Sequence record: OP292654.1
Reading direction: 5' to 3' (one strand)
DNA: 64,000 nt
The notes beneath the pieces are model-generated. The model was given only the letters and a program-made list of their open reading frames with translations. It was not told the origin of the DNA and searched no databases. Numbering within the stretch: position 1 is the stretch's first letter; each line of letters opens with the position of its first letter. The position numbers were made by a program, and so were the translations under genes. This document shows, piece by piece, positions 2,348-35,086 of this stretch.

Positions 2348-2375
2348 GAAACGATTCAAAAGTTTCTGGTATAAT
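2348..2375 (+). promoter_or_regulatory. GAAACG-N16-TATAAT class promoter
   Basis: GAAACG at 2348, TATAAT at 2370; repeated motif. Confidence 0.7.
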
Positions 2376-2392
2376 ATAGTACATAAGGCAGC

Positions 2393-2514
2393 GGAATCTT
2401 ACAGCAAAAATTAAACCTTTTGATGAAAACAAAACGACGGGGTTCAATTCCCCACCCACGAACATCTGCCTTATTCAAATAGTGGGAGCTTGGTGCTGGA
2501 TAAAAAGAGATTCC
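2393..2514 (+). ncRNA. CAGCAA-family element with permuted tRNA-like module
   Basis: GGAATCT/AGATTCC terminal stem, ACAGCAA, T-arm GGGG-TTCAATT-CCCC, closed acceptor-like CCCAC/GTGGG. Confidence 0.7.
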
Positions 2515-2537
2515 TGAATTTAATTAAGAAAATTTTT

Positions 2538-2565
2538 GAAACGAATCAAAAATTTGTGGTATAAT
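2538..2565 (+). promoter_or_regulatory. GAAACG-N16-TATAAT class promoter
   Basis: GAAACG at 2538, TGTGG-TATAAT at 2560. Confidence 0.7.
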
Positions 2566-2582
2566 AAAAGTATTAGCAACAC

Positions 2583-2698
2583 GAAATCTTACAGCAAACA
2601 AAACAATATTTTTTATGCGAAAAAAACGGTGCGGTTCGAATCCGCAGCAGCCATGTTGCTATGTAGGCTGTGCTTGGGGCCAGAAAAACAAAGATTTC
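2583..2698 (+). ncRNA. CAGCAA-family element with anticodon loop GCG and permuted tRNA-like module
   Basis: GAAATCTT/AAGATTTC stem; TTTTT-AT GCG AA-AAAAA; T-arm TGCGG-TTCGAAT-CCGCA; GCAGCC/GGCTGT acceptor-like stem. Confidence 0.75.
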
Positions 2699-2723
2699 AG
2701 TTTCCTCAAACAAGGATAACAAA

Positions 2724-2882
2724 ATGGCATCAGCAGAAGAAAACATGGTAATTGTTCGTAAAATCCTTAGTGGAATTGACAACAATAACCTTCCTGAAGT
2801 AATGTCTGAATTAGGTTTTGAAGTGACAAAGAGTACAGAAAAAAGTACAGAATGGTCATTGAAAGAATCTGAACAAACATAA
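2724..2882 (+). CDS. small hypothetical protein
   Basis: AAGGA RBS before ATG 2724 (track ORF start overlaps the ncRNA). Confidence 0.55.
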   Translation: MASAEENMVIVRKILSGIDNNNLPEVMSELGFEVTKSTEKSTEWSLKESEQT

Positions 2883-2884
2883 TT

Positions 2885-2956
2885 GTTCCCATCGTCTATC
2901 GGTTAGGACGCCTCCCTTTCAAGGAGGAAAGCGGAGTTCGATTCTCCGTGGGAACG
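2885..2956 (+). tRNA. trnE: tRNA-Glu(TTC)
   Basis: full cloverleaf, CCTCC-CT TTC AA-GGAGG, TTCGATT T-loop; CCA not encoded. Confidence 0.95.
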
Positions 2957-2960
2957 CTAA

Positions 2961-3066
2961 AAGAATCGTCCAGCAAACATAACTCTTTATATTTCATTTG
3001 GCGAAAAACACCTTCGGTTCGAATCCGATTTACCACTGGCTGTGGGGATAGAAAACAACGATTCTT
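2961..3066 (+). ncRNA. CAGCAA-family element with anticodon loop TTG and T-arm
   Basis: AAGAATCGT/ACGATTCTT stem; TTTC-AT TTG GC-GAAA; TCGG-TTCGAAT-CCGA; CCAC/GTGG. Confidence 0.75.
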
Positions 3067-3094
3067 GTCTTTTAATTAAACCGAATTAGCACTC

Positions 3095-3250
3095 GGATTC
3101 TGACAGCAACACATAAAATCTTAAAATCTATCAAATAATGAGATTGGATACTCGGACGTAAAACTCCCTTCGTGTCCACCTGGTAACTAGGGAGATAATA
3201 ATTAGTTATATTGAGCCGTGCTAGGTAGTTGCTCAATTAATAGAGAATCC
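3095..3250 (+). ncRNA. CAGCAA-family element, long divergent cargo
   Basis: GGATTCT/AGAATCC stem followed by GACAGCAA; about 135-nt interior without a clear T-arm. Confidence 0.5.
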
Positions 3251-3291
3251 AGCGTACAAAGTACTTAAATCCTATTGGACAGTACTTTTTT

Positions 3292-3384
3292 GGAAGATTG
3301 GCAGAGCTTGGCTTATTGTACCTGACTTGAAATCAGGCGGGGGTTAATAGCCCTCCGTGGGTTCGAATCCCACATCTTCCTCCA
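3292..3384 (+). tRNA. trnS: tRNA-Ser(TGA)
   Basis: cloverleaf with long variable arm, CCTGA-CT TGA AA-TCAGG, encoded CCA. Confidence 0.95.
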
Positions 3385-3392
3385 AAATTTAT

Positions 3393-3514
3393 GAGAAAGT
3401 AGCTCAGTTGGTAGAGCAGGTAGAAACCCAAAATTACAGTACTGTAATTTCGCAGCAACCATACTTCATCCACTTTTAATGGCCTGGTCGTTGGTTCGAG
3501 TCCAACCTTTCTCG
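3393..3514 (+). tRNA. trnK: tRNA-Lys(TTT) interrupted by a 49-nt insertion (3421-3469)
   Basis: removing 3421-3469 gives a perfect cloverleaf: GAGAAAG/CTTTCTC, GGCCA-CT TTT AA-TGGCC, GTTGG-TTCGAGT-CCAAC. Confidence 0.85.
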
Positions 3515-3516
3515 CA

Positions 3517-3577
3517 TAGAATCTAACAGCAAACATATTCTTATTCAATTGGTGAAAACAAAGATTATAGATTCTAG
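3517..3577 (+). ncRNA. CAGCAA-family minimal element (loop AA TTG GT)
   Basis: TAGAATCTA/TAGATTCTA stem, ACAGCAA, TTC-AATTGGT-GAAAAC. Confidence 0.7.
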
Positions 3578-3630
3578 TTTTTAATTTAGTTTAAAAATAC
3601 TAAATAAAGTTGAAGCCATTCAACAAACAT

Positions 3631-3727
3631 GGTAAAGTGGCAGAGCTTGGCTTATCGCAGTCGCCTGGAAAGCGGCCAGGTTAGGTAATCCCTAGCCTCG
3701 GAGGTTCAAATCCTCTCTTTACCGCCA
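3631..3727 (+). tRNA. trnS: tRNA-Ser(GGA)
   Basis: cloverleaf, long variable arm, CT GGA AA loop, encoded CCA. Confidence 0.93.
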
Positions 3728-3746
3728 ATACACACAAGGAAGAAAA

Positions 3747-3962
3747 ATGTTTTACGATTATTACTACAAAGTAGATGGTGCTTTGCGTCGTCATACTAGT
3801 GCTGAAGAATTGAATGACGAACAAGTTAGCAATATCTTCGGAGCACAAAAATCAGTAGTTCTACTTGAGCCAGTAGTTTTTGAACGTGAAGTTCAAGACG
3901 AAGAAACCAAGAAGAAAAGTACTGTTAAAGAACACGTTGGCTATATCGGCTACGTAGAATAA
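3747..3962 (+). CDS. hypothetical protein
   Basis: AAGGA RBS. Confidence 0.65.
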   Translation: MFYDYYYKVDGALRRHTSAEELNDEQVSNIFGAQKSVVLLEPVVFEREVQDEETKKKSTVKEHVGYIGYVE

Positions 3963-3969
3963 AAGAATT

Positions 3970-4028
3970 TGGAATCCTCCAGCAACCACACAAAAACTCA
4001 AACTTTTACTTTGACTATGTGGATTCCA
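3970..4028 (+). ncRNA. CAGCAA-family minimal element with Lys(TTT)-type anticodon stem-loop
   Basis: TGGAATCC/GGATTCCA stem, CCAGCAA, TCAAA-CT TTT AC-TTTGA. Confidence 0.75.
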
Positions 4029-4045
4029 GTATTAATTGAGAGATA

Positions 4046-4276
4046 ATGATTATGGATAATCAACATAAACAAATTAAAGGGTATCGAGACTTGAATCAGC
4101 AAGAAATTAATGCGATGAACGCAATTAAGGACTTGGCTGCTAAAGTGGGCGATATGATCGACGCACTTGAAGATCATCCTGATATTGATAAACGTTGGCT
4201 GGCTATAGCTAAGACTGACCTACAGAAAGGTTTCATGTCGGCAGTACGGAGCGTAGCAAAACCGGATTCATTCTAA
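4046..4276 (+). CDS. acb2: anti-CBASS cyclic-nucleotide sponge Acb2 homologue
   Basis: MDNQHKQIKGYRDL..EI..MN.IK ... RWLAIAKTDLQKGFM...R..AKPDSF closely resembles my recollection of the Acb2/Vs.4 family N- and C-terminal motifs. Confidence 0.85.
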   Translation: MIMDNQHKQIKGYRDLNQQEINAMNAIKDLAAKVGDMIDALEDHPDIDKRWLAIAKTDLQKGFMSAVRSVAKPDSF

Positions 4277-4744
4277 ATGAGCAAATACGATGTGTTATAC
4301 GAAATTGGAGAAGAATATTTCATTTCGTTATTACATACGCCGGAACGATGTAGATCAACTATTGATGGATTATCTAATACCGTGAATTTTAATGTAAATG
4401 ATCATTATTCTTCACGAGACGGGGTAATCCATTTTTATTTGTCGGACGAAAAGGAAAACACCTTTTCAGTTGTTGTTGACTTGTTAGCTAACAGGTTCAG
4501 CGTACACTACTGGAGCGATGATGACGATATTGATACTGACATATTCAAGGTCAATAAACTCCCTTACAATATTAGTGAGGAATGGCATTTCCAGTTGAGT
4601 ACTAAAGCAGAATTTCCGTTCAGTTATGAATTCATAACACGGTTACGCGAGTTCGTTAAGTACTTCGAAGATATGATGAATGTTAATCATAGCATAGACG
4701 CACTTAGGGAACATCATAACATTGTACCATATCCTTGTAGGTGA
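4277..4744 (+). CDS. hypothetical protein, EE-x-FQ-x-[ST] paralog family
   Basis: SEEWHFQLST motif shared with 9865, 10248, 17279, 17797. Confidence 0.7.
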   Translation: MSKYDVLYEIGEEYFISLLHTPERCRSTIDGLSNTVNFNVNDHYSSRDGVIHFYLSDEKENTFSVVVDLLANRFSVHYWSDDDDIDTDIFKVNKLPYNISEEWHFQLSTKAEFPFSYEFITRLREFVKYFEDMMNVNHSIDALREHHNIVPYPCR

Positions 4745-4748
4745 TATT

Positions 4749-4985
4749 ATGGAAACCATCGTAGATGAAATCCTGAATAGTGCTAATATGCACGAAGCTG
4801 TTCGTAAGTTTGTAGACGCAAACGAACGTTCAAATAATATTGATTTGTACCAAGCACTGACTTATGTGTTCTTTGAAATGGATGAAAAAGATCCTCGCTT
4901 CGAAGAACTGAACGATGTACTTGACGCAATGAGTGGTCATTGTAACAAAGCATGTTACATCGGCACTGGTGATTATGCCTGGTAA
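4749..4985 (+). CDS. hypothetical protein
   Basis: AGGTG RBS before ATG 4749. Confidence 0.65.
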   Translation: METIVDEILNSANMHEAVRKFVDANERSNNIDLYQALTYVFFEMDEKDPRFEELNDVLDAMSGHCNKACYIGTGDYAW

Positions 4986-4997
4986 CAGGCATTAAAT

Positions 4998-5070
4998 GGG
5001 AATATAATTCAGTTGGTAGAATGCTCGACCGATAATCGAGTCGTCGCTGGTTCGAGTCCAGCTATTCCCA
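4998..5070 (+). tRNA. trnI: tRNA-Ile(GAT)
   Basis: cloverleaf GGGAATA/TATTCCC, CTCGA-CC GAT AA-TCGAG. Confidence 0.9.
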
Positions 5071-5154
5071 CTAAGTAGTACTGTGAAATTATCCAACACA
5101 ATAGGTAGCACTTTGGATGAATCAGTAAGCCTATATCGTACTACAAATAAATTA

Positions 5155-5290
5155 AAGAATTCAACAGCAACTAAATGTTAACCCAAATAGCGGCCTTATG
5201 GCGTGTAGGTTCGAGTCCTACGATCTATGTCAGTACGAATAGTGATGGTGAAATAGGTAGACACGGCTATCCAATAAACGATGAATTCTT
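5155..5290 (+). ncRNA. CAGCAA-family element with circularly permuted class II (Leu-like) tRNA body
   Basis: AAGAATTCA/TGAATTCTT stem; 3' half (ATAGC, variable hairpin GCC-TTAT-GGC, GTAGG-TTCGAGT-CCTAC) precedes 5' half (GGTGAAATAGGTAGACAC D-arm, GCTAT). Confidence 0.75.
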
Positions 5291-5308
5291 GTATTAATTT
5301 GGAAAAAT

Positions 5309-5569
5309 ATGGATATTTTATACGCTAAAGTAACTGAGCTTAATGCTGGTTACGAAGGTGATCGAATAAACGCAAAAGCGTTAGACCCGGATCATTACTA
5401 CGTTGTTAGTTATGTTGATATGGGAAGTTCTAGTACTTCAATATACTTAGAAAATGACCGTAAATCATATAACTCTGTAAATTTTACTTTCTACACTATT
5501 GTTGACGGTAAACATAAAGAGTACAACATATTCAGTGACCCGAATTATAATCCGTACCTTAACCTATAA
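5309..5569 (+). CDS. hypothetical protein
   Basis: ORF with GGA RBS. Confidence 0.65.
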   Translation: MDILYAKVTELNAGYEGDRINAKALDPDHYYVVSYVDMGSSSTSIYLENDRKSYNSVNFTFYTIVDGKHKEYNIFSDPNYNPYLNL

Positions 5570-5578
5570 AGGTGATAT

Positions 5579-5719
5579 ATGTCAGGCAACGCACATAGCT
5601 CTAAACGTAACGACCATAGTTATGAAACGCTGAATCGCAATAATCCGCATCATTCGCGTCGTAATGACCATAGTTACGAAACCCTGAATCGTAATAACCC
5701 GCATCAACCTAAACGTTAA
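5579..5719 (+). CDS. 46-aa micropeptide with duplicated RNDHSYETLNRNNPH motif
   Basis: AAAGGTG RBS; 54-bp-period direct repeat differing mainly at synonymous positions. Confidence 0.65.
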   Translation: MSGNAHSSKRNDHSYETLNRNNPHHSRRNDHSYETLNRNNPHQPKR

Positions 5720-5736
5720 TGCGTTAGTAACAAATT

Positions 5737-5851
5737 TGGAATTTAACAGCAATCACTTTCTATCACGCAGCATGTCGCAGGTTCGAGTCCTGTCAGTACT
5801 AGTACTGTAGCTCAGTTGGGAGAGCAGCCGCCTAAAACGAAATAAATTCCA
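5737..5851 (+). ncRNA. CAGCAA-family element with circularly permuted tRNA-Asp-like body (anticodon ATC)
   Basis: TGGAATTTA/TAAATTCCA stem; CT ATC AC-GCAGC-ATGTC-GCAGG-TTCGAGT-CCTGT-CAGTACT then AGTACTG-TA-GCTC AGTTGGGA GAGC-A-GCCGC. Confidence 0.8.
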
Positions 5852-5974
5852 GTCTTAATCAAATTCACCAGGCGTACTATGGTGTGATACGGATAGCATG
5901 TTATCCTATAAGGTCAGAATAGAATACGTATTAGTCTCTTGAAAAGACTTCTGTAAACTCAATTTGTACTCATT

Positions 5975-6029
5975 TAGAATCTACCAGCAATTAAAACTTC
6001 TCGGATATAGAAAACAAAAATAGATTCTA
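5975..6029 (+). ncRNA. CAGCAA-family minimal element (loop CG GAT AT)
   Basis: TAGAATCTA/TAGATTCTA stem, CCAGCAA, TTCT-CGGATAT-AGAA AAC. Confidence 0.7.
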
Positions 6030-6053
6030 GCTTTAATTGAATAAAACCGGATT

Positions 6054-6115
6054 TGGAATCCAGCAGCAACCATAAATGAACTCAACTGTTAATTGAAAAC
6101 TCAAAATGGATTCCA
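6054..6115 (+). ncRNA. CAGCAA-family minimal element with Asn(GTT)-type anticodon stem-loop
   Basis: TGGAATCCA/TGGATTCCA stem, GCAGCAA, TCAA-CT GTT AA-TTGA AAAC. Confidence 0.8.
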
Positions 6116-6132
6116 GTATTTTTAAGTGAAAT

Positions 6133-6633
6133 ATGAGCAGAAAACTTGAAATTGATAATCGTGTAGTTCAGGAAATGATTTCACGAGGAAGTACTATTCA
6201 GCAAATAGCTAATACATGTAACGTATCAGCAACAACGATGAAAAAGTATTTCAAAGATTTGAGTTTAAAAACTCACACAATGATTCAACGTGAATCTTCA
6301 ATATGTTTAAAACACAATATTGAATTTTCACAACGAACAGACGGCAAACGTGTATGTATGAAATGTAATTCTGAAGGAGTTACAGAACATCGTAAACGAT
6401 TAAAGATAAAAGCCGTTGAATATCTTGGTGGTAAATGTGAACGATGCGGATATGATAAATCAATAGCTGCGTTAGACTTCCATCATAAAGACCCAAGTCA
6501 GAAAGATTTTGGAATTTCAGATGAAGGTGTTACCCGTTCATGGGAAGTTATTCAAAGTGAATTAGACAAATGTATGTTAGTTTGTGCTAATTGTCATCGA
6601 GAAATTCATGAAGAACTTAATTTAGAAAATTAA
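6133..6633 (+). CDS. HNH homing endonuclease
   Basis: GGKCERCGY...ALDFHHKDP...CMLVCANCHREIH; N-terminal HTH-like segment. Confidence 0.85.
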   Translation: MSRKLEIDNRVVQEMISRGSTIQQIANTCNVSATTMKKYFKDLSLKTHTMIQRESSICLKHNIEFSQRTDGKRVCMKCNSEGVTEHRKRLKIKAVEYLGGKCERCGYDKSIAALDFHHKDPSQKDFGISDEGVTRSWEVIQSELDKCMLVCANCHREIHEELNLEN

Positions 6634-6643
6634 GAAAAAAGAT

Positions 6644-6671
6644 GAAACGCCACAAGAAATTGTGGTATAAT
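6644..6671 (+). promoter_or_regulatory. GAAACG-N16-TATAAT class promoter
   Basis: GAAACG 6644, TGTGG-TATAAT 6666, upstream of tRNA-Asn. Confidence 0.7.
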
Positions 6672-6690
6672 ATAAGTAAGAAAAACAAAA

Positions 6691-6762
6691 GGTTGTGTCG
6701 TATAAAGGTTATTACGGAGAGCTGTTAACTCTTTTATCTTGGTTCGATTCCAAGCATAACCG
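6691..6762 (+). tRNA. trnN: tRNA-Asn(GTT)
   Basis: cloverleaf, GAGAG-CT GTT AA-CTCTT. Confidence 0.92.
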
Positions 6763-6810
6763 CAAAGTGATGTTTGGGCGGTTTGATAATATATAAATCC
6801 AAACAGAACA

Positions 6811-6856
6811 AAGAATCTTCCAGCAATTAAAACGGTTGAATAATATATAGATTCTT
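6811..6856 (+). ncRNA. CAGCAA-family minimal element
   Basis: AAGAATCT/AGATTCTT stem, CCAGCAA; short interior with only a weak hairpin. Confidence 0.6.
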
Positions 6857-6860
6857 GATT

Positions 6861-6936
6861 AGGCTCATGGTGTAATTGGCTAACACACCGGATTTTGATT
6901 CCGGCATTCTAGGTTCGAGTCCTAGTGGGCCTGCCA
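6861..6936 (+). tRNA. trnQ: tRNA-Gln(TTG)
   Basis: cloverleaf, CCGGA-TT TTG AT-TCCGG, encoded CCA. Confidence 0.95.
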
Positions 6937-7081
6937 ATTTAAAGATTTCATCACTTCCTGTGTGAAACAAGCTGGTATTTCCCCCTGCTTGTAAAATTAT
7001 CGAAAGGGAACCGAGTAGCACCTGTACAGGTCAGTTCGTAAAGAACAAGTATGTACAGTACTGACAGCGGCAGTACAACCT

Positions 7082-7154
7082 GCGAGTATCATATAGAGGC
7101 TTAATATGCTGTCCTTCCAAGTCGGTCACATCGGTTCGAATCCGATTACTCGCT
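7082..7154 (+). tRNA. trnG: tRNA-Gly(TCC)
   Basis: GCGAGTA/TACTCGC acceptor, CT TCC AA loop, one anticodon-stem mismatch. Confidence 0.88.
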
Positions 7155-7281
7155 CAGATTAAGTAAACAAACAAACAAAAAGGTAAATCCTATGATGCTA
7201 TAGAAATTCAGTACTGGTCCACCGGATAAAGTTAATTCAGAACAAAACACTAAATTAATTACTATCCAAAAGGAACATACT

Positions 7282-7608
7282 ATGTTGACCAAAGAACAAT
7301 TCATTACTGTAACAACAACCTGGAAACTTGAAAAAGAGCATACTGTACACGAGCATATTATCTATAATATTCTTCGGGGTAAGTCGGCTGATGAAGGTTT
7401 CGTGCCATTGACTGATTGGGGTCGCCTACATGCGAGTCAAAACAATCCTTGGTTTAACTATGACAATGCGATTCTTGAATTGCGTTACCGCTTGAATGAA
7501 AAGCGTTATGGTTATGAAGGTACAGTAAAACATTATTCCGAAGTTTTCGGCATTGATTTTACACCGGACTTAGTTGCTGCTATCGTCGCAGAACTTAAGA
7601 CCAAATAA
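7282..7608 (+). CDS. hypothetical protein
   Basis: AAGGA RBS. Confidence 0.7.
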   Translation: MLTKEQFITVTTTWKLEKEHTVHEHIIYNILRGKSADEGFVPLTDWGRLHASQNNPWFNYDNAILELRYRLNEKRYGYEGTVKHYSEVFGIDFTPDLVAAIVAELKTK

Positions 7609-7614
7609 CAAATT

Positions 7615-7678
7615 TAGAATCTAACAGCAAACACTATTTTATTTCACTTATCTTGAAAACCGAAAATAATAGATTCTA
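7615..7678 (+). ncRNA. CAGCAA-family minimal element with anticodon-like loop TAT
   Basis: TAGAATCTA/TAGATTCTA stem, ACAGCAA, TTCA-CT TAT CT-TGAA AAC. Confidence 0.75.
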
Positions 7679-7693
7679 GTCTTTATTCTCAAA

Positions 7694-7960
7694 ATGAGGA
7701 AAACTGATATGGCACGTGAGTTTATGCACTTTGCTTACTTCAAAGAAGTAACCAAAATGGAGCAAGCAAAATCTGGTATTAAACCACTAGAAATAGAAGA
7801 TTTTGCGAACCAAATCGAAGAAATGGTTCAAAAGATGATCGATGCTGGTGAAGATGAAGGTATGTTTCGTATAACTTTACCTGATAACTTACCGCCAGAA
7901 AAAGCAGTTGAGTTCATTGACGAAGTTATGCGTCGTCTAAATGATCGTTTCGGTGGATAA
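7694..7960 (+). CDS. hypothetical protein
   Basis: ORF in co-directional run. Confidence 0.6.
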   Translation: MRKTDMAREFMHFAYFKEVTKMEQAKSGIKPLEIEDFANQIEEMVQKMIDAGEDEGMFRITLPDNLPPEKAVEFIDEVMRRLNDRFGG

Positions 7961-8450
7961 CATGACTTCCTCTGAAATTTCTCAGGCAAGAACTGCGTTC
8001 GATATTCTCGTTAGAGATAAAGAACGCATGATTGATTTAATCAATCGTGATAAGTTACAGATTAATAGCGGTGCTAAGTTTGTAATTGAACAGTACTTAA
8101 ATGGTACACTTGAAAGTTTAGATACTTCTTTGTACTCCAATTCGGTACTGATTGCTATTGATTTACTGAAAAAAGCATTGGAAGAAAGTAAGCCAATTTA
8201 TGGTGACTTTTATCCTGAATTACGTCAACGTTACTTTGAAATATTAAATTGTCAACCAATTGAGAATTCAAACAACGCACTTACTGATAGTCATTTAGCG
8301 TGGATGTTAACTGAACTATCTAAACCAACTATGTCGGAAACAAAGAAACATCGTTGGCTTGGATACATTCAGGGTGTAATGGCTACAAAGTCTCACATTG
8401 TTGTAAACGAAGAACGTGACGCTACCCGCGACGTGTTTAAGGGGAAATGA
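7941..8450 (+). CDS. hypothetical phage protein
   Basis: C-terminal HLAWML...KKHRWLGYIQG motif recalled from phage proteins. Confidence 0.7.
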   Translation: MIVSVDNMTSSEISQARTAFDILVRDKERMIDLINRDKLQINSGAKFVIEQYLNGTLESLDTSLYSNSVLIAIDLLKKALEESKPIYGDFYPELRQRYFEILNCQPIENSNNALTDSHLAWMLTELSKPTMSETKKHRWLGYIQGVMATKSHIVVNEERDATRDVFKGK

Positions 8451-8662
8451 TGTTTAAGTACTTTGTTCGTTATGAATACACATACTTCAGGCGTGGTGCT
8501 TATTGGGAAGACAGTTCTGGTGAGCATGTAAAAGAAACTGATTCCATGATCATCAGTTCTGAAAAAGAACTAGATGAAATCTTTGAAGTACAGGATATTA
8601 TTAAGGAAAAACTTAATATGTCCCAAACATATTTTGATATTATTGCCATGAACAGGTTATAA
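8447..8662 (+). CDS. hypothetical protein
   Basis: ATGA overlap with upstream gene. Confidence 0.6.
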   Translation: MMFKYFVRYEYTYFRRGAYWEDSSGEHVKETDSMIISSEKELDEIFEVQDIIKEKLNMSQTYFDIIAMNRL

Positions 8663-8670
8663 TATCTGTT

Positions 8671-8742
8671 GGAGCCATCGTTTATCGGTTAGGATACTCC
8701 CCTGTCACGGGAGTGGGGCGGGTTCGATTCCCGCTGGTTCCG
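8671..8742 (+). tRNA. trnD: tRNA-Asp(GTC)
   Basis: cloverleaf, CTCCC-CT GTC AC-GGGAG. Confidence 0.95.
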
Positions 8743-8761
8743 CTAATTAATAAGGAAACTT

Positions 8762-9043
8762 ATGAATAAGAAAGCAAAGAAGCGTATCTTTGATGCAGTA
8801 ATGGCATCATCAGGTGAACATGTTCAAAACAATCACCGTTATCGTAATCTGGTAAAGAAAAGCATACTAATGCGTTCTCGTGGTCGTGGTCGCCGTAAGT
8901 ATAAAGGTGGCCTATGGACTGAAGCTGAAATCATTCATACAATGACTTGGCGACATAAAGAAACTTATCCCGAATGGGATGCTGAAGAAGCCGCACGTTT
9001 AGAACAAAGTGTTGGCTTGCTGTGTGGAAATCCAAATGCATAA
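8762..9043 (+). CDS. hypothetical basic protein
   Basis: TAAGGA RBS. Confidence 0.65.
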   Translation: MNKKAKKRIFDAVMASSGEHVQNNHRYRNLVKKSILMRSRGRGRRKYKGGLWTEAEIIHTMTWRHKETYPEWDAEEAARLEQSVGLLCGNPNA

Positions 9044-9632: not shown

Positions 9633-9653
9633 CTAAATCTAAGGATTAACGAA

Positions 9654-10690: not shown

Positions 10691-10718
10691 GAAACGGCAC
10701 AAGAAATTGTGCTATAAT
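10691..10718 (+). promoter_or_regulatory. GAAACG-N16-TATAAT class promoter
   Basis: GAAACG 10691, TGTGC-TATAAT 10713, directly upstream of tRNA-Pro. Confidence 0.65.
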
Positions 10719-10793
10719 CGGAGTGTGGGCTAATTGGTTAGCCGCCTAGTTTGGGGCTAGGAGTTTATGTAGGTTCGAGTCCTATCATTCCGA
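10719..10793 (+). tRNA. trnP: tRNA-Pro(TGG)
   Basis: cloverleaf, CCTAG-TT TGG GG-CTAGG. Confidence 0.9.
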
Positions 10794-10799
10794 CTAATT

Positions 10800-10873
10800 G
10801 CTTGTTTAACTCAGTTGGTTAGAGTGCCATCTTTACACGGTGGAAGTCACAAGTTCGAATCTTGTAACAAGCA
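10800..10873 (+). tRNA. trnV: tRNA-Val(TAC)
   Basis: cloverleaf, CCATC-TT TAC AC-GGTGG. Confidence 0.93.
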
Positions 10874-10885
10874 CACAATACACTT

Positions 10886-10959
10886 CGGAGTGTAGCTCAG
10901 TCTGGTAGAGTGTTCCGTTTGGGGCGGAAAAGTCGCAGGTTCAACTCCTGTCACTCCGA
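10886..10959 (+). tRNA. trnP: tRNA-Pro(TGG), second copy
   Basis: cloverleaf, TTCCG-TT TGG GG-CGGAA. Confidence 0.93.
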
Positions 10960-11017
10960 CAAAATTTGAAAAGTAATTCATATCCAAAAGAAAAGACTAA
11001 ATACTCTAAACAAAGGA

Positions 11018-19294: not shown

Positions 19295-19322
19295 GGAACG
19301 ACTCAAAATTTTCTGGTATAAT
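19295..19322 (+). promoter_or_regulatory. GGAACG-N16-TATAAT class promoter
   Basis: GGAACG 19295, TATAAT 19317. Confidence 0.65.
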
Positions 19323-19472: not shown

Positions 19473-19500
19473 GGAACGGAAACAAAAAGTGTGGTATAAT
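19473..19500 (+). promoter_or_regulatory. GGAACG-N16-TATAAT class promoter
   Basis: GGAACG 19473, TGTGG-TATAAT 19495, upstream of tRNA-Met. Confidence 0.65.
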
Positions 19501-19514: not shown

Positions 19515-19589
19515 TGCGGAGTAGAGCAGCATGGTCAGCTTGCCAGGCTCATAACCTGGAGGTCGGTGGTTCAAATCCATCCTCCGCAT
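19515..19589 (+). tRNA. trnM: tRNA-Met(CAT), initiator-like
   Basis: TGCGGAG/CTCCGCA, CCAGG-CT CAT AA-CCTGG, fMet-like D-arm. Confidence 0.88.
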
Positions 19590-19670
19590 CAAACTTATAC
19601 AAAGCCAATGTGCTTCGGGGTGTATCACGTCTGCCCGAAAGCCGACTCGGTATAAGTCAGGACGTGATAA

Positions 19671-19743
19671 GGGGCTATAGCTCAGTTGGTAGAGCAACTG
19701 CCTTGCACGTAGTAGGTCTGCGGTTCAAATCCGCATAGCTCCA
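19671..19743 (+). tRNA. trnA: tRNA-Ala(TGC)
   Basis: GGGGCTA/TAGCTCC with G3:U70, CT TGC AC loop. Confidence 0.95.
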
Positions 19744-19998
19744 CTAGAAGATTGAAAAGTACGACTTACGGCTGGCTGCTGCCAGGGGTCAACACGATTG
19801 ACCATCTTCACGAAATTACGTATCGTCTAACGTTTAATCTTGCGTATTGTCCAAAGAAGGGATATAATGGATTAGATAGGATTCTGGTTCGCCCACGAGG
19901 GGTTCTGGGGATACAGGTGAAAATCCTGTTGCGTATGCCAAAAATTTGTAGTACAATGAATGTAACAAAGAAACTCAATAAACCAAAGAGGTAACACC

Positions 19999-28361: not shown

Positions 28362-28362
28362 T

Positions 28363-28629: not shown

Positions 28630-28782
28630 TAAGATGCTCTACATCGAGGGGAAATATCCCCTCCTTTTAAGTGAGAAGAATTATGTCCTGGGGTGAAGAA
28701 TTAGTACTGATGATATTGATTATCATCCTGTTAGTTGTATCGCCTGAGATGCACATTCTGTAAAAAAAGATTCAAAAAGTCC

Positions 28783-28810
28783 TTGACACCATAAAGTGGT
28801 GTGATATACT
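28783..28810 (+). promoter_or_regulatory. sigma70-type promoter
   Basis: TTGACA-N16-TATACT with TG extension. Confidence 0.7.
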
Positions 28811-28898
28811 GGACACCTCAAGACAGGAAGCACACTCGCACTGTCTGGTACTGAAAAGTACTTAAGGGTGAAAAGTTGAAAGAAATAGAAAAAAGTAC

Positions 28899-28927
28899 TT
28901 GACAGCCGATTCGCTAGATAGTATTAT
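28899..28927 (+). promoter_or_regulatory. sigma70-type promoter
   Basis: TTGACA-N17-TATTAT. Confidence 0.75.
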
Positions 28928-28933
28928 GAAGAC

Positions 28934-30172
28934 TCTGAAGTGAACGTGAAAACGACGATAACTGACAAAGAGGATTGAACGCAGATGTAACAGATAATCT
29001 AAAACCAAACATTGATCTTAGAAAACTCTTGAATTTGCGGCTCTAAATGAGCAAAAGTCGCAGTACTACAGCGTGTAGACTGCCGTGTAGAACCCTAGCG
29101 GGAGCAGCGTCGCCCCGCGAACCGGAACTATAGGAGATCGCCATCATGAAGTAATTAACGTTTCATCCAAACTTACTTATAAATGATGCGAGTTCTTGTC
29201 TAACAGAGGTACGTTAAGCAAATACGTATGGCTCATAATGTAGAAAGAACTGACATATTGCGAATGAACTTGGGATACTATGAGATCCAAGGTGGAGATG
29301 AAGTTGGGATATTCCCGATAGAGAATCTGTGAAGCCTGTTCATGTCTGACTTCGCCCTTGAATAGTAAGGGCAACCAAATTTCGAGAATGGGATAATATT
29401 TCCGGTATAAAGAGGATAACTGTTTATAGCGTCGATACCTGAACTCGAATATACAATTCCCCGACAGATCCGTTCGGGGAATTGCGAAGAAGTAGTAAAC
29501 CCCGATGTAGCATACTGCCTGGATTGATTCCTGCCAGATAGCACTTTGGGAGATTGCGGGTAGTGTACGCCTTGTCCGATACCGCTTTGTGGGCTTAGTG
29601 CCAATTGATGGGTCGGAAGGGGTTTGCCAGTCGCATAGTATATGAGTAGAAACACGACTAACTGACCATAGTTAGATGAAGTCAACAGAGGACTTTCCCT
29701 AATCGTCTGATAGGGTACGGTGATAGACCATGCCGTGAGTGTTTCAGCATACATTATCAGTATAGCGTAGATACTGACCTCTTTCGAGAGTGCTTGATTA
29801 GCGATGTATGTCCGGTCTTTCCGAACAAAGACCAAACCAGGATTGAAGTACTACGAAGTTGTGTGCTATAATCTGTTCGGAGAGGACTAGCACATAGCGA
29901 TTCACAAACCATCGTCGAGCTTTGACATTCGCTTAGTGCTTGTGTTATTGTAAGACAGGTGGATAGTGAGCAAAATGAGTTGTCACTGCGATGTGTTCCA
30001 TAAGTCACATCTGGCCTTGACAACCAGGGAACAGCCGACTATACTGTAAAGCATAGATTCCCCGCTACCTGTGAGATGGTCTGCCCTCGTGCGGTAAAGG
30101 TGTTTCGGAGGGAGAGGTAGAAGCGAGTATCTACCATAACCCAACCCCGCCGGAGAAATCCGGCAACTTTTA
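28934..30172 (+). ncRNA. candidate giant structured ncRNA (about 1.2 kb)
   Basis: no plus-strand ORF >=60 aa; tandem promoters upstream; many hairpins; GCCGGA-GAAA-TCCGGC + T-rich end. Confidence 0.6.
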
Positions 30173-30200
30173 ATTGAACTTCATTAAGTAAGGTGTTATC

Positions 30201-30422
30201 ATGAGCAATCAAATTAAAACTCGTCTGGTTAATCTGATTAAAGTAACTGCTGCTGAGCAGTGTTTAGGTCAGCGTGATCTAGCACGTAAATTCGATCTTC
30301 ATCAGGCACGTGTTTCAAATCTGTTGGATGAACGTCTGTATATGTTCACCGTAGATGAACTGCTGAAGTGCGTAGAAGCCCTGGGCTTCAATGTTGAAAT
30401 CAACGTATCACCAAAGGGGTAA
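30201..30422 (+). CDS. XRE-family helix-turn-helix regulator
   Basis: LGQRDLARKFDLHQARVSNLL...FTVDELLKCVEALG. Confidence 0.8.
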   Translation: MSNQIKTRLVNLIKVTAAEQCLGQRDLARKFDLHQARVSNLLDERLYMFTVDELLKCVEALGFNVEINVSPKG

Positions 30423-30593
30423 TACCATGAAAGAATACATCGTTGAATACTTCCAGAAAGGTAGCTCCGTTCCTCTCAGTACTCGTCAGGGTGCTCGTTC
30501 ACCGGAAGAAGCACGTACCGCTGCGAAGCGTGAGAAAGGGAATGATATTATCATTCGTACCACTCGCGAAGCATAACAAATATTAAGAAAGAT

Positions 30594-30620
30594 AAAGGCC
30601 ATCAATTGATGGCCTTTTTT
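30594..30620 (+). terminator. intrinsic terminator
   Basis: AAAGGCCATC-AATT-GATGGCCTTTTTT. Confidence 0.85.
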
Positions 30621-30652
30621 ATTGGAAGTAAATTGTCGTACAAAATATATAC

Positions 30653-31648
30653 ATGGAGATTGCTGTGGGTCCGAAAAAACTAAACTTAGAAGAAATCCAA
30701 GATGAAGTACTGAATGAGTGCTTCGAAGATGAAAACAATGATCTTTTGGAATTGTCTGAAGATGACGATGAAGAAGGTTCAGATGATTCAGTTCCTGAAG
30801 GTGGTCTAACTCTGGATAAACTCAAAGCGGCGGTTAAATCGGAACAATATATCAGCAACGAAGAACTAGTAAAAATGGTTCAAGACGGTGTAAACGTTGA
30901 AGAAGCTAAAAACAAAATCATTCTGTTTAATAGCGGATTAGTTTACAACGAAGCGAAGAACTGTACCTGTAACATTCCTTTCCAGGATAAAGTGCAATAT
31001 GGGTTCGAAGGATTGATGAAAGCGATCTACGGATATAACGGTCAGTTCACTACACGTTTCAGTACTTACGCTACTACTACTATTCGTCAGCATATGTACC
31101 GTAATGGTAATAATGAAGTTCGTATGGTTGCGTTGCCTGAACATCTGTCACGTGATAACATTCGCATCCAAGCGTTCATTGAGCGTTACACGACTGAAAA
31201 TACTGGCTATCCAACGAATGAGCAAATCGCGGCGGGAACAGGCATTGACATTCGGGCAGTAAAGCGTATAATGAACTATAACGCCAACACATTCAGTATC
31301 GACACTCCGATGAATCGTGGTGAAGAAGGTTCAGAACAAACACTGAAAGATGTGATTACGTCTGATACCGCTGATTATGTAGTGGATGAACGTGTCATGA
31401 ACAAAGACTTCCTTACTGTGATGGATGAAATCATGGATCAGTTGGAAGAACATGAACGTGTGTTACTTGGTTTATGTCACGGTTTAGATGGTTACAAGAT
31501 GCATACCTTTGATGAAATTATTTCATCCGGTTATATTGACGGTAAAGGTAAGTTCGTAACTTCTAAAGCAACTCTATCTCGTCGTTACAATGATATGATG
31601 GACAAAGTACGTCGCATCGTTGAACGTAACAATATCAACTTTGATTAA
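30653..31648 (+). CDS. sigma70-family RNA polymerase sigma factor
   Basis: region 2 (GFEGLMKAI..RFSTYATTTIRQ), region 3 (VALPEHL, PTNEQIA, SIDTPM), region 4 (LEEHERVLLGLCHGLD..TFDEI). Confidence 0.88.
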   Translation: MEIAVGPKKLNLEEIQDEVLNECFEDENNDLLELSEDDDEEGSDDSVPEGGLTLDKLKAAVKSEQYISNEELVKMVQDGVNVEEAKNKIILFNSGLVYNEAKNCTCNIPFQDKVQYGFEGLMKAIYGYNGQFTTRFSTYATTTIRQHMYRNGNNEVRMVALPEHLSRDNIRIQAFIERYTTENTGYPTNEQIAAGTGIDIRAVKRIMNYNANTFSIDTPMNRGEEGSEQTLKDVITSDTADYVVDERVMNKDFLTVMDEIMDQLEEHERVLLGLCHGLDGYKMHTFDEIISSGYIDGKGKFVTSKATLSRRYNDMMDKVRRIVERNNINFD

Positions 31649-31659
31649 AGGTATATATT

Positions 31660-32157
31660 ATGGCTGGTGGTCGTCGCGGTTTAGTATCAAGTATCAACAA
31701 TTTCACAATTGAAGAACTTGCTAATAAAATGCTTGTTGATCCTCAACTGGAAAACAAAGTAAAGCTGTACAGTAATAACCAAAACATGAATGACAAAACT
31801 CGTGAACATGCGAAACTGTCATATGACTTGTTCCGTATCTTGCGTCGTGAACGTTGGAAAGTTCGTAAAGCAGATACAGCAGCACGTGTAGAAGCTGCTA
31901 AACAGGCAAGGCGTGAACAATGGGCTGAAAACAACCCAACGTCATTACGATTCAAAACAGTACCTCAGATTCTGGAAGCTATTGAATCTGATAAAGTAAC
32001 ACGTAATAAGGTAAGTTCCTATTTGTCTAATTCAAATAGTAATCTTTCTGAAGATTTCAAAAAGCGGTTACGCTTGGCTATGATTGCGTACTACATGAAA
32101 ACCAATCCGAATAGTCCAGTACTGACTAAACATCTGAACAAACTGATGCCGGAGTAA
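31660..32157 (+). CDS. hypothetical basic protein
   Basis: AAGGT RBS. Confidence 0.7.
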   Translation: MAGGRRGLVSSINNFTIEELANKMLVDPQLENKVKLYSNNQNMNDKTREHAKLSYDLFRILRRERWKVRKADTAARVEAAKQARREQWAENNPTSLRFKTVPQILEAIESDKVTRNKVSSYLSNSNSNLSEDFKKRLRLAMIAYYMKTNPNSPVLTKHLNKLMPE

Positions 32158-32160
32158 TAC

Positions 32161-32868
32161 ATGACACACAAAGATAAACGCTCAGTAGCTACTGATGCTC
32201 TGGAAACTCTCGGTACTATTCATACTCGCGAAGAACGTCGCGACGCAATTCACTTAGGTGTTGAACCAGTGGAAGCTGGTGAAGACCTTACCGTTGGTTC
32301 AAACATCGGTATTGGCGAAGATGGTAAAGCATATGGTTCAGATTTCAACAAGTACATTAAACCTGTTGGTATCGTCGATCCATTTCTGACTGAGAAAGTA
32401 CAGAAAGGTGAGAAGTTCTGGCTCGTAGTATATCCTCGCCAGATTACTTCACTTGCCCATGTATGGGAACACCCGGACTTCCCAAGTTCAGTTAAAGAAA
32501 AATCAGTATCTGAAATGAGCAGTGAAGAACTGATGGCAGAAATTCAGAAACGCCTGGCTCAGAACAACACTGTTAGTACTGTAGCAGAACCAGTTAATAC
32601 TGAACTTCTGGAAGCACAAAAACGTGCCAGTACTGAGCAAGCATCTATTCAATGGATCAATCAATACGCCGACAATCTCGGTATTGATTACGATGTACTG
32701 ATGGATTACGCAGATCGTTGGGTACAAGGTTATCATGACTATCTGTGTTATGGTGGACTGTTAGAAGGTGAATACGTCTCTGACGAATTCTGGAACCATT
32801 ATGATATTGTCCGTGGTCGCACCACTGATGATCGTGATCGTGGTTCATTCTTTACCTGTTCATGTTAA
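32161..32868 (+). CDS. conserved hypothetical phage protein
   Basis: RDAIHL..GIVDPFL...FWLVVYP..ITSLAHVWEHPDF. Confidence 0.75.
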   Translation: MTHKDKRSVATDALETLGTIHTREERRDAIHLGVEPVEAGEDLTVGSNIGIGEDGKAYGSDFNKYIKPVGIVDPFLTEKVQKGEKFWLVVYPRQITSLAHVWEHPDFPSSVKEKSVSEMSSEELMAEIQKRLAQNNTVSTVAEPVNTELLEAQKRASTEQASIQWINQYADNLGIDYDVLMDYADRWVQGYHDYLCYGGLLEGEYVSDEFWNHYDIVRGRTTDDRDRGSFFTCSC

Positions 32869-32909
32869 TAATTGTGGGGCATTAGCCCCACATTCTTTAG
32901 GAAACTATT

Positions 32910-33272
32910 ATGAGAAAAATTCTTTTAGGTATTGCTCTACTGAGTGCTTCATTCTTCAGTACTGCTTCTATGAATCCATCCCCAGGCGTATATAACCTGA
33001 ATTGTGTAAAAGAAGCTGATAAACCATCAGTGACAAATGTACAGGCAAACACTAATGACGGTTCATTTGTATTTGGTGCTGAGAAGTACTACAACGCAGG
33101 TGAGCAAGTTAGCGGTACAGCAATTGCCATTACCTACAAATCTCAATACACAAAGAACAGTATTCTTCTGTTGATTGATACTGTATCAAATACATCTCGC
33201 TATATGATTAGTGATGGTAAGAAGGTATTTGAAAACGGTGTTTGTATGTTCGATAATTCGGTACTTATTTGA
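32910..33272 (+). CDS. hypothetical secreted protein
   Basis: signal peptide MRKILLGIALLSASFFSTA. Confidence 0.65.
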   Translation: MRKILLGIALLSASFFSTASMNPSPGVYNLNCVKEADKPSVTNVQANTNDGSFVFGAEKYYNAGEQVSGTAIAITYKSQYTKNSILLLIDTVSNTSRYMISDGKKVFENGVCMFDNSVLI

Positions 33273-33768
33273 TAACTGAGGTAACTCATGAACCCAAGTG
33301 AAGCGAAAGCTAAACAAAAGAAAAGGTATAATGAGATAGCAGTACTAGTAGCTAACGGAAGGTTAGGTTATATTCCTGCTAATAAATCTCGTTTCAGTAA
33401 ATCAGCTTCAAATAAATTTGCTCAAGATATTAGTTTCAATTAAGGAAGTACTATGAAACAATTCTGTATAGCTTTTTTAGTAGTGCTGGTCTTTTTTGCT
33501 GGTGAAATTTTATTGCTATCCATTCACACTCCTAAACCAGAAACGTCTAAAGTAACGCCATATAGCGAGATACAAGCTAAGCAGAAGCGTTTAGAACAAG
33601 CTAAAGCTGAACTTGACGATGATTGCTCTATCGCGATGTGTAGTGCGTTTGGTGGCGGTATAGCAGGGGATACCCTAGCCATTCAATTTATGAATGGTGA
33701 TTGAAAGTCCTTGACGGGGCTGAACCATAATGATAAGATGTACTCACTATCAAGGCGAGGACATTATT

Positions 33769-34137
33769 ATGTATGAATTCAACCCTGTTATTTTAAGTGA
33801 GCGTAATATCAAAGAAACCCATACTGCTTTAAGTACGGGGAAACTGAGTTATCATGATGAACGCATTGAGCGTGAATTAACTGACGCAATTCAGATGATT
33901 ACTGATGCGTTTCATAACCGCTTAAATGGTTGGAAAGAGCGTGAGTTCTGGCGGGGCATGGTTGAAACTTTACTGGTTCAATTCAGTAAAGAAGAACCAG
34001 AAGTTACGGTAATGTTCATTCGTGGAATTACCAATAATGATGTTAATATCACATATCGTGAATTTCCATTGTTCCGTCCATTTGTATTAGTATATGGACC
34101 ATTACTTCGTCGTGCTCGTTGCTATAAAGGAGTCTAA
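33769..34137 (+). CDS. hypothetical protein
   Basis: GAGG RBS; promoter TTGACG-N17-TAAGAT at 33711. Confidence 0.65.
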   Translation: MYEFNPVILSERNIKETHTALSTGKLSYHDERIERELTDAIQMITDAFHNRLNGWKEREFWRGMVETLLVQFSKEEPEVTVMFIRGITNNDVNITYREFPLFRPFVLVYGPLLRRARCYKGV

Positions 34138-34396
34138 CATGACTATCATCCATATGTACGCTGTTGTTGACAACGATACCAATCAAGTTATTGGTAAAAA
34201 AGTTAGTCCCTTCGCACCACCAAAGATGCAAAACATCAACTACACGTTGACTTTTCCTGATGGTACTGAAGTTCAGGGTAAAGCTTTTCTGTCTAAAGCA
34301 GTGAAGTACTGGAACGTAGTTAAAGATCCTTTGTATCTGGTTCAGCCGGGTATTCAAGAGATTGAACTGAAACTGGAAGGCTTTTAAGGTGATTCT

Positions 34397-34762
34397 ATGT
34401 CAATCTTAGATGTGGATATAAATGAAACACAAATTCTGTTCGATGTTGTCAAAGGAGACGGAGAATTTGAATTTAACAGTTTAGTCTTCGTCCCAAAATA
34501 TCATTGGGAAAAAAATAACGAACTGATTGATTGTGTAACATATCAATCCGTTGGTTTTTCTGAAGGTGAAAACGATTTTGGTTATACTATTGTAGATTGT
34601 AATAGTGTAGTATGTGCTATTCATCCCAATGGTTCAGATAGTACTTCACTTTTTGATATTCAAAAGTTAATCAATATCTTAGAGGAAATGGGGTTTCAAT
34701 ATGAACCTGGTTTGATCGCGGCGTATGATAACGATTGCAACTTTTACATCAATAATTATTGA
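34397..34762 (+). CDS. hypothetical acidic protein
   Basis: TAAGGTG RBS. Confidence 0.65.
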   Translation: MSILDVDINETQILFDVVKGDGEFEFNSLVFVPKYHWEKNNELIDCVTYQSVGFSEGENDFGYTIVDCNSVVCAIHPNGSDSTSLFDIQKLINILEEMGFQYEPGLIAAYDNDCNFYINNY

Positions 34763-35058
34763 AGGCTTTATTTAATGATTACCTTAGACCCAAATAACAT
34801 ACCAGAAGGATTCACCGATAATTATTCATTTCAGTATGATACCAAAGAGTATTTTAAAAATACCGATCTGAAAAACAAATTGAATAAATTATTTGGTTCA
34901 TCTTTTAAGGCAGTTTACAGTACTGTTAAAGACTACGATCTTGATGGTGACACCATTGATTTAAGTGGTGATACTATTCTGATTTTTAATCATAAAGGTG
35001 AACTTATTAAAGTGAACAATTCTGAATGGTTGTTTATCACAAAACTTTAATAAAATCT

Positions 35059-35086
35059 GAAACGGCACGAATTTCTGTGCTATAAT
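35059..35086 (+). promoter_or_regulatory. GAAACG-N16-TATAAT class promoter
   Basis: GAAACG 35059, TGTGC-TATAAT 35081. Confidence 0.65.

Follow-up and report, generated by a model that had tools for sequence, protein, structure and literature searches.

Three promoter classes were described in phage CBB (Buttimer et al. 2017, PMC5259590): an RpoD-like class with TTGACA and UP-like elements, concentrated in the early region that holds a regulator and a sigma factor, a 'second possible promoter' with a classic -10 and the -35 sequence TGAAACG, and a T4-like late motif. The second class, for which MEME gave 18 copies, lies mostly before DNA-synthesis genes, with one copy before a gp55-like sigma factor, and is also present in phage GAP32, whose TGAAACG promoters are attributed in PMC5259590 to Abbasifar et al. 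(2014). No reader is assigned to the class in its published description. In this work, we analyse the last 64 kb of Xanthomonas phage XbC2 (OP292654.1, 367,901 bp, Mimasvirus), a jumbo phage related to Rak2, GAP32 and CBB. This stretch of 64,000 nucleotides (nt), hereafter the window, was placed by megablast at positions 303,902-367,901 of the record. It contains seven promoters of the form G(A/G)AACG-N16-TATAAT, which an earlier, sequence-only reading had taken for a separate class serving stable-RNA genes. The class, here termed class M, is the divergent RpoD-like 'TGAAACG' promoter known from CBB and GAP32. The seven sites belong to one genome-wide XbC2 class of 39 copies, which, on comparative sequence evidence, is probably read by an RpoD-like sigma factor of the phage and would provide the 'middle' promoters of a sigma cascade.

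Several described systems resemble class M in part. T4 middle promoters have a MotA box (TGCTTtA) centred at -30, 12 ± 1 nt from a sigma-70 -10, and work by AsiA/MotA sigma appropriation. Like class M, they have a good sigma-70-type -10, often with TGn, and a phage-specific element that replaces TTGACA; they serve replication, nucleotide-metabolism and tRNA genes and stand between an early (sigma-70) and a late (gp55, TATAAATA) class. Class M differs in having TGRAACG 16 nt from the -10, and XbC2 encodes a full RpoD-like sigma and no recognizable MotA or AsiA (six-frame search of the whole record with PF09114 and PF09010, no match at E ≤ 1). In the cascades of SPO1 (gp28, then gp33/34) and phiEco32 (gp36), an early phage sigma replaces the host sigma on core RNA polymerase (RNAP), reads non-host promoters and triggers a later class. 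The -35 and the -10 both differ from those of the host in SPO1, as does a single extended -10-like element in phiEco32, whereas XbC2, for which we infer such a cascade role, matches the sigma-70 extended -10 consensus and departs from the host only in its -35 (with phage XaC1 as the exception).

Bacterial extended -10 promoters with UP elements share with class M the TGn, the perfect TATAAT, the A/T-rich upstream sequence and the poor match to TTGACA. They need no conserved -35, whereas the class M heptamer hardly varies and differs between phage lineages in a concerted manner. A restriction to RNA genes and a GC-rich discriminator between -10 and +1 set stringently controlled stable-RNA (rRNA/tRNA) promoters apart from class M. 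The -35 TGAAAC/TGGAAC also resembles that of extracytoplasmic function (ECF) sigma promoters ('GGAAC/TGAAAC', with a -10 'CGT'). This is a resemblance only: unlike in the ECF systems, the class M -10 is TGnTATAAT, and the phage sigma has Sigma70_r3 and matches RpoD/RpoS best.

The window is the early/tRNA region of the phage, with many short hypothetical open reading frames (ORFs), a helix-turn-helix (HTH) regulator and a sigma-70-family protein. Rfam and ARAGORN count 24 and 21 tRNAs, respectively, and Rfam at gathering thresholds detects tRNAs only over the whole window. GRAACG-N16-TATAAT matches exactly seven times, always on the + strand, at 2348, 2538, 6644, 10691, 19295, 19473 and 35059, against a mean of 0.07 and a maximum of 1 in dinucleotide shuffles. 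In all seven, TGG or TGC directly precedes TATAAT, which results in an extended -10 (TGnTATAAT), and a T precedes the hexamer. The 29 nt upstream contain 72-86% A+T, compared with 62.5% for the genome. These sites are real, non-random promoters; their number, positions, exact 16-nt spacing, TGG/TGC and A/T-rich tracts were all recovered as the sequence-only reading had described them. It had also placed the protein-coding units behind TTGAC promoters, a fair description of the window, where about 30 TTGACA-type sites occur on the + strand and protein units mostly lie behind them.

The whole XbC2 record was rebuilt from 20-kb pieces (cited below by L numbers) and scanned for the class, and the genes 3' of the sites were assigned from the deposited annotation, ARAGORN and our own ORF calls. 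A position weight matrix scan yielded 39 sites, all of them on the + strand, and gave no hit in shuffled sequence. As a pattern, GRAACG-N16-TATAAT occurs 25 times exactly and 45 times with at most one mismatch on the + strand and three times on the - strand, while the reversed-pattern control gave 3 and 0. TGnTATAAT occurs 58 times on the + strand, and G[GA]A[AT][CT]N stands at exactly N16 in 37 of these. The consensus (A-tract, T-G(A/G)AAC(G/A), N10, TTTG-TG(G/C)-TATAAT, GTA) is wider than the sequence-only reading had noticed. TGnTATAAT is perfect in 37 of the 39 sites, and the C and G after TGRAA carry 1.8 and 1.3 bits.

Protein-coding genes lie downstream of 25 of the 39 sites, with a coding sequence (CDS) starting within 120 nt in 21 of them. 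The other sites precede tRNAs (seven, one being a tandem copy), a large noncoding RNA (ncRNA) family (five) and tRNA-like units (two). The protein targets for replication include the unit containing DNA polymerase, primase with helicase, gyrase B with topoisomerase, the clamp-loader unit, SSB with a RecA-like protein behind tandem promoters, RNase H, and DHFR, RNase HI and helicase. A gp55-like late sigma (XbC2_241) with recombination endonuclease subunits is a further target, as are a Cas4-like nuclease with RNR, the thymidylate-synthase unit and a nudix hydrolase with glutaredoxin in nucleotide metabolism. A ClpA-like ATPase and NadR-like and NAPRTase genes are also among the targets. The - strand blocks, which encode structural proteins, contain no class M site. 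Judged by these positions, class M would drive replication, recombination and nucleotide-metabolism operons, the gp55-like late sigma and about one third of the stable-RNA units.

These targets bear on the claim of the sequence-only reading that the promoters are found only before stable-RNA loci and form a dedicated stable-RNA regulon, distinct from all protein-gene promoters. The claim agrees with the window, where 7/7 sites precede tRNAs or RNA-like units, and with the early/tRNA region at 262-341 kb, where a tRNA starts 1-22 nt after the -10 at 6 of 11 class M sites versus 1 of 38 canonical sites (Fisher p = 2e-4). This local preference for RNA genes is real. RNA-driving sites are also slightly richer in upstream A/T than protein-driving sites (0.77 versus 0.69, p = 0.012, uncorrected for four tests). 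Against such a regulon, the 25 protein-gene sites have the same core as the RNA-driving sites, including the GAAACG/GGAACG ratio and the base at -13, and about 20 of 35 tRNAs have no class M promoter and are embedded in early protein operons, with some 11-15 of the 35 in dedicated class M units. tRNAs and CDSs occur together in the units downstream of 2538 and of record position 270120, and a GC-rich discriminator is absent, the mean GC of the 7 nt after the -10 being 0.33 in RNA-driving versus 0.44 in CDS-driving sites. RNA-driving sites were also rejected as a sequence subclass, with the core being the same and only weak trends in upstream A/T and discriminator GC. The sequence-only reading had proposed a genome-wide motif scan as a check and had named occurrences before many protein genes elsewhere as refuting. 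The scan finds just that, so the RNA-only regulon is refuted on its own terms and retains a negligible probability.

TTGACA-N16-18-TATAAT-like sites number 146 on the + strand and 30 on the - strand of the whole record, compared with 41 in shuffled sequence. Class M is a distinct promoter class, separate from this canonical class. Temporal class best accounts for the local association with tRNAs and ncRNAs, the middle promoters lying inside the early region. Since the protein genes of that region are early genes, the middle promoters there front almost only RNA genes, which makes the class look specific to RNA. Beyond this local pattern, a promoter class restricted to RNA genes does not exist, and the motif had already been published for sister phages.

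The same class is found in the relatives of XbC2. Erwinia phage Kaldavass is ~91% identical to XbC2 over the aligned part, and GAP32 and CBB, of the same genus, have a common gene order with XbC2 and ~82% identity in patches. The strict pattern occurs 32 times in Kaldavass, 32 times in CBB, 31 times in GAP32 and 32 times in Serratia phage BF, on the coding strand only and with controls at 0, and the sites are collinear across these four phages. XbC2 shares with the CBB/GAP32 class the -35 (TGAAACG/TGGAACG), the classic TATAAT -10, the restriction to the coding strand, the syntenic positions and the location before DNA-synthesis genes and the late sigma. The 18 published copies compare with 31-32 in CBB/GAP32 and 39 in XbC2 here. 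New with respect to the CBB paper are the invariant TGn, the fixed 16-nt spacing, the use before tRNAs and ncRNAs, and the co-variation with the phage sigma across genera. In the literature on TGAAACG promoters and Rak2-group transcriptomics, we found the motif described only in the CBB paper and no transcript start data; the XbC2 paper contains no promoter analysis.

The proposed reader is an RpoD/RpoS-like sigma factor encoded at 30653..31648 (+) of the window, with regions 2 and 3 and a divergent region 4. Its sequence is that of a divergent group-1/2-like sigma, in which Pfam recognizes regions 2 and 3; the best NCBIfam matches are RpoD_Cterm and RpoS (E ~1e-28, far below the equivalog cut-offs), and PDB alignments with Thermus sigma-A extend into region 4.2. 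Homologues were found only in Rak2-like jumbo phages, with 97% identity to the XbC2 protein in Kaldavass, 74% in GAP32 and CBB, 70% in the Eneladusvirus group, 47% in XaC1, 42% in Munch, 31% in 121Q and 30% in RaK2. The distribution of the motif follows this series, with ~32 copies where the sigma is ≥ 70% identical and 0-2 copies in Munch, XaC1, 121Q and RaK2.

The promoters differ between the five lineages compared (Mimasvirus/Eneladusvirus, XaC1, Munch, 121Q and RaK2), each of which has its own version at the corresponding position 5' of a shared set of orthologues. The version of Munch is CTTGGGACAAA ... TGATATAAT (25 sites on the + and 0 on the - strand), that of 121Q TG(G/A)GACA ... TGnTATAAT (18 and 0), that of RaK2 TTGAACAAAA ... 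TGATATAAT (17 and 1) and that of XaC1 TGAAACG-N16-TATACT with TGTyC before and A after it (19 and 0). The orthologous targets in the five lineages are the late sigma, the ClpA-like ATPase, SSB, primase, RNase H, the DNA-polymerase leader gene, nudix and gp261. In each lineage, the -35 shifted jointly at eight or more orthologous promoters, with spacers and flanks diverging freely. Such concerted, lineage-specific change at many independent promoters would require a phage-encoded reader, and the sigma is the only conserved candidate at its locus.

The sigma proteins were aligned with E. coli sigma-70 from NC_000913.3, whose -35 helix, TRERIRQIE, reads TTGACA. The residues aligned to this helix are SKATLSRRY in Mimasvirus/Eneladusvirus (proposed -35 TGRAACG), SKPTLSRRY in XaC1 (TGAAACG), SRTSLHRCY in Munch (GGGACA), SRSSIHRKY in 121Q (GGGACA) and VRGTLHYKF in RaK2 (TGAACA). 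XaC1 is the informative case, as the Mimasvirus-type helix and the same predicted -35 are kept and the -10 region is changed; alone of the two TGAAACG lineages, it has Q437 replaced by R and H455 by Y, together with the altered -10. The host does not explain these differences: XbC2 and XaC1 differ in their -10 despite having been isolated on one host species, and the XbC2 motif is common to phages of Cronobacter, Pectobacterium, Serratia and Erwinia. The changes in -35 and -10 thus appear to track residues of sigma regions 4.2 and 2.4/3.0, independent of the host. This comparison lends support to the suggestion in the sequence-only reading that the phage sigma is the reader, a role that we infer from the co-variation.

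The same comparison weighs on an alternative in which class M consists simply of strong promoters for host sigma-70, with an extended -10 and a UP-like A-tract, that fire as soon as infection begins. TGRAACG would then be a weak or non-canonical -35, and the variants would reflect drift or concerted cassette evolution with no phage factor involved. Read as nTGAAA-N18, the element does match TTGACA at 4-5 of 6 positions, and several sites have TTGAAA or TTGGAA in the N18 register, but the conserved C and G after TGRAA find no explanation in this register. The perfect TGnTATAAT of nearly all sites and the A-rich tract upstream would suit sigma-70, as would the RaK2 and 121Q versions (TTGAACA, GGGACA), which are near TTGACA; T4 early promoters likewise combine a non-standard -35 with an extended -10. 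Near-identical cores among some sites (for example 6644, 10691 and record position 201685) hint at cassette spread. Drift or cassettes are harder to reconcile with at least eight orthologous promoters that shifted their -35 together per lineage while spacers and flanks remained free, with the different -10 regions of XaC1 and XbC2 on one host species, and with a separate perfect-TTGACA class that is kept distinct from class M in the same genomes. We regard this explanation as unlikely.

A second alternative retains host sigma-70 RNAP and has it redirected at TGRAACG by a phage activator or sigma appropriator, like T4 MotA/AsiA, with the phage sigma in another role. The combination of a sigma-70 -10, usually with TGn, and a non-sigma-70 element in place of the -35 is indeed the architecture of T4 middle promoters. 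The replication and nucleotide-metabolism targets match the T4 middle class, and more than 400 XbC2 proteins of unknown function leave room for an activator. However, the six-frame searches gave no MotA_activ or AsiA homologue, and the element occupies the usual place of a -35, 16-17 nt from the -10, and not that of the MotA box (12 ± 1 nt). Only one regulator adjoins the sigma gene, an HTH_37 protein encoded first in the same operon (30201..30422, +), and it is not conserved outside the Mimasvirus/Eneladusvirus group. It was rejected as a universal -35 binder, as XaC1, Munch, 121Q and RaK2, which keep the class, have no homologue of it; the other neighbours of the sigma gene also lack homologues in these four phages, whereas the sigma has one. 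A change of the -10 in XaC1 would also be unexpected if sigma-70 still read that element. The activator-modified host RNAP of the sequence-only reading is hence left with no candidate, and we judge it distinctly improbable.

With the phage sigma as the reader, expression would proceed in three steps. Host sigma-70 RNAP would first transcribe the early region from TTGACA promoters, including the operon for the phage RpoD-like sigma. Core RNAP with the phage sigma would then recognize TGRAACG by means of an altered helix in region 4.2, and TGsTATAAT by means of regions 3.0 and 2.4. This would switch on the 'middle' regulon, including the late sigma, and complete a three-step sigma cascade. The promoters at the sigma locus fit this order of host sigma-70, phage sigma and late sigma: the HTH-sigma operon lies behind a canonical TTGACA-N17-TATACT promoter ~155 nt upstream (30017..30045, +), with further TTGACA-type sites at 29843 and 29922 and no class M site nearby, and the late sigma lies behind the lineage's class M version in all five lineages.

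For the Rak2-like jumbo phages in general, we lean slightly towards a cascade from host sigma-70 to the phage RpoD-like sigma and on to a gp55-like late sigma. In each lineage, the sigma and its ~20-40 middle promoters would have co-evolved, the -35 (TGRAACG, TGGGACA or TTGAACA) with the region 4.2 helix, and in XaC1 the -10 (from TGsTATAAT to TGTyCTATACTA) with regions 2.4 and 3.0, and the stable RNAs would be part of the middle regulon.

Several points count against the phage sigma as the reader. TGnTATAAT matches the extended -10 of sigma-70 perfectly, and the host holoenzyme alone should manage such promoters without a -35 contact. The phage sigma has TT instead of the conserved W433/W434, and 121Q and RaK2 change R436/Q437 with a -10 that is still TATAAT, so that the mapping of residues to bases is not clean. 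Region 4 of the sigma was not detected by Pfam and was reached only by the PDB alignments with Thermus sigma-A. The co-variation comes from five lineages only and is confounded by phylogeny, and another co-diverged phage protein could be the reader. In public data and literature, no infection RNA-seq run, transcript 5' ends, time course or in-vitro results were found for this phage group; the public RNA data that hold parts of the stretch are metagenome contigs only, and no infection transcriptome was among them.

XbC2 now has a complete promoter map of class M, and the matched variants in five lineages make the question of specificity directly testable. If the proposed co-evolution is true, these phages offer a natural set of sigma factors, each matched to its own promoters and orthogonal in specificity, from which orthogonal pairs could be drawn. 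The connection of tRNA clusters and an unclassified large structured RNA to class M suggests that stable RNAs are made together with the replication genes and not with the earliest genes.

This large RNA, of ~450 nt, was identified behind the seventh window site. The class M promoter at 35059..35086 (+) is followed by an ncRNA copy at 35136..35581 (+), one of five paralogues in XbC2. The ORF-free stretches after record sites 28739, 94616, 175122, 259177 and 338960 are paralogous, and the other four copies lie at L003:8845-9279, L006:14714-15168, L010:15196-15680 and L014:19271-19759, each of the five with a class M promoter directly 5'. Full-length copies were detected with nhmmer in XbC2 (5), Munch (5), 121Q (4), XaC1 (5) and RaK2 (3). 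In an alignment of 15 copies from four genomes, nearly every copy is directly behind its own lineage's promoter version. RNAalifold predicted 94 base pairs from these copies; compensatory double changes occur in 54 of the pairs, and support is poor for 8. Judged by this covariation, site 35059 would drive a genuine structured RNA. An Rfam search of 35050-35730 at E ≤ 1 gave no matches, and nhmmer revealed no similarity to the RNA-seq-validated PA5oct ncRNA001, 002 and 004.

For the other window sites, the claim that each precedes a tRNA or candidate ncRNA holds for the most part. Sites 6644, 10691 and 19473 abut tRNAs at 20, 1 and 15 nt, and 2348 and 2538 precede units of ~150 nt with a T-arm-like module, but the 2538 unit also contains a CDS and the sequence after 19295 is not conserved. 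Taken together, the observation in the sequence-only reading is partly confirmed and its interpretation partly supported. Orthologues of sites 2348, 2538, 6644, 10691 and 19473 were found in CBB/GAP32. Single-sequence folding of four downstream units gave unremarkable z-scores (-0.4 to -1.8).

The promoter at 2348..2375 (+; GAAACG-N16-TATAAT with TGG, preceded by T and an A/T tract) has orthologues in Kaldavass, CBB and GAP32, the GAP32 orthologue being upstream of a SprT-like CDS. It precedes a transcribed unit of ~160 nt (2376..2537, +) with a tRNA T-arm-like module and a long-range closing helix. A tandem promoter, 190 nt downstream (2538..2565, +), is followed by a unit (2566..3727, +) composed of a tRNA-like module (2566 to ~2720), a CDS (2724-2882) and four tRNAs in the order tRNA-Glu, tRNA-Ser, tRNA-Lys with an insertion, and tRNA-Ser. 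The CDS ahead of tRNA-Glu is conserved, encodes 52 amino acids and has a Shine-Dalgarno sequence and ATG. The units 2376-2537 and 2566-2720 are paralogous; both open with a conserved ...CG(G/A)AATCTTACAGCAAA and enclose a T-arm-like module of the GGTTCRAWTCC type in a long-range helix. Their starts are kept in four phages (XbC2, Kaldavass, CBB and GAP32).

The promoter at 6644..6671 (+) lies 20 nt 5' of tRNA-Asn, the first of a tRNA-Asn, tRNA-Gln and tRNA-Gly cluster with no intervening CDS (6691..7155, +). At 10691..10718 (+), TATAAT abuts tRNA-Pro in a cluster of tRNA-Pro, tRNA-Val and tRNA-Pro (10719..10960, +). The distance to the first tRNA-Pro(TGG) is 1 nt, which places the expected start site inside the tRNA; the matching position in GAP32 and Kaldavass has a leader of 18 nt. 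In XbC2 (10691-10794), this first tRNA-Pro could be made intact only via read-through from upstream, and the tRNA-Val and second tRNA-Pro 3' of the promoter are complete. The promoter at 19473..19500 (+), 15 nt 5' of tRNA-Met(CAT) in a tRNA-Met and tRNA-Ala unit (19515..19744, +), is kept in Kaldavass, CBB, GAP32 and BF. The promoter at 19295..19322 (+) is present in XbC2 and Kaldavass only and absent from CBB, GAP32 and BF. A conserved ncRNA after 19295 was rejected, as the interval is 150 nt in XbC2 versus 59 nt in Kaldavass and of unrelated sequence. This site is probably a lineage-specific tandem upstream promoter of the tRNA-Met/Ala unit.

Directly 5' of the HTH-sigma operon, 1.5 kb of the window (28630-30200) contain no annotated CDS. 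This stretch opens with two strong canonical promoters with UP-like tracts (28783, 28899) and may hold an early ncRNA or unannotated small genes.

Outside the window, a terminator-like hairpin with a T-run (L011:8236-8290, record 188236-188290) is located between a class M promoter and the small gene 5' of DNA polymerase. XbC2, XaC1, Munch, 121Q and RaK2 all have this layout, with stems that differ in sequence, a pattern suggestive of a conserved attenuator or of a 5' structure with a stabilising role. A hairpin and then a T-run also open the first ncRNA copy (record 28767-28800). At L015:10120-11047 (record 270120-271047), a class M promoter is followed by tRNA-Ser(GCT) and then directly by a CDS annotated as class II aminoacyl-tRNA synthetase, forming a mixed unit. 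Another class M promoter is found 22 nt ahead of a tRNA (L016:12074-12147, record 292074-292147) whose anticodon, CTA, would read amber stop codons; the annotation of this tRNA is 'tRNA-Pyl'. XbC2 itself was deposited as a phage of Xanthomonas vesicatoria, yet its aligned parts are ~91% identical to Erwinia phage Kaldavass; its GC content is 37.5%, and all of its close relatives infect Enterobacterales.

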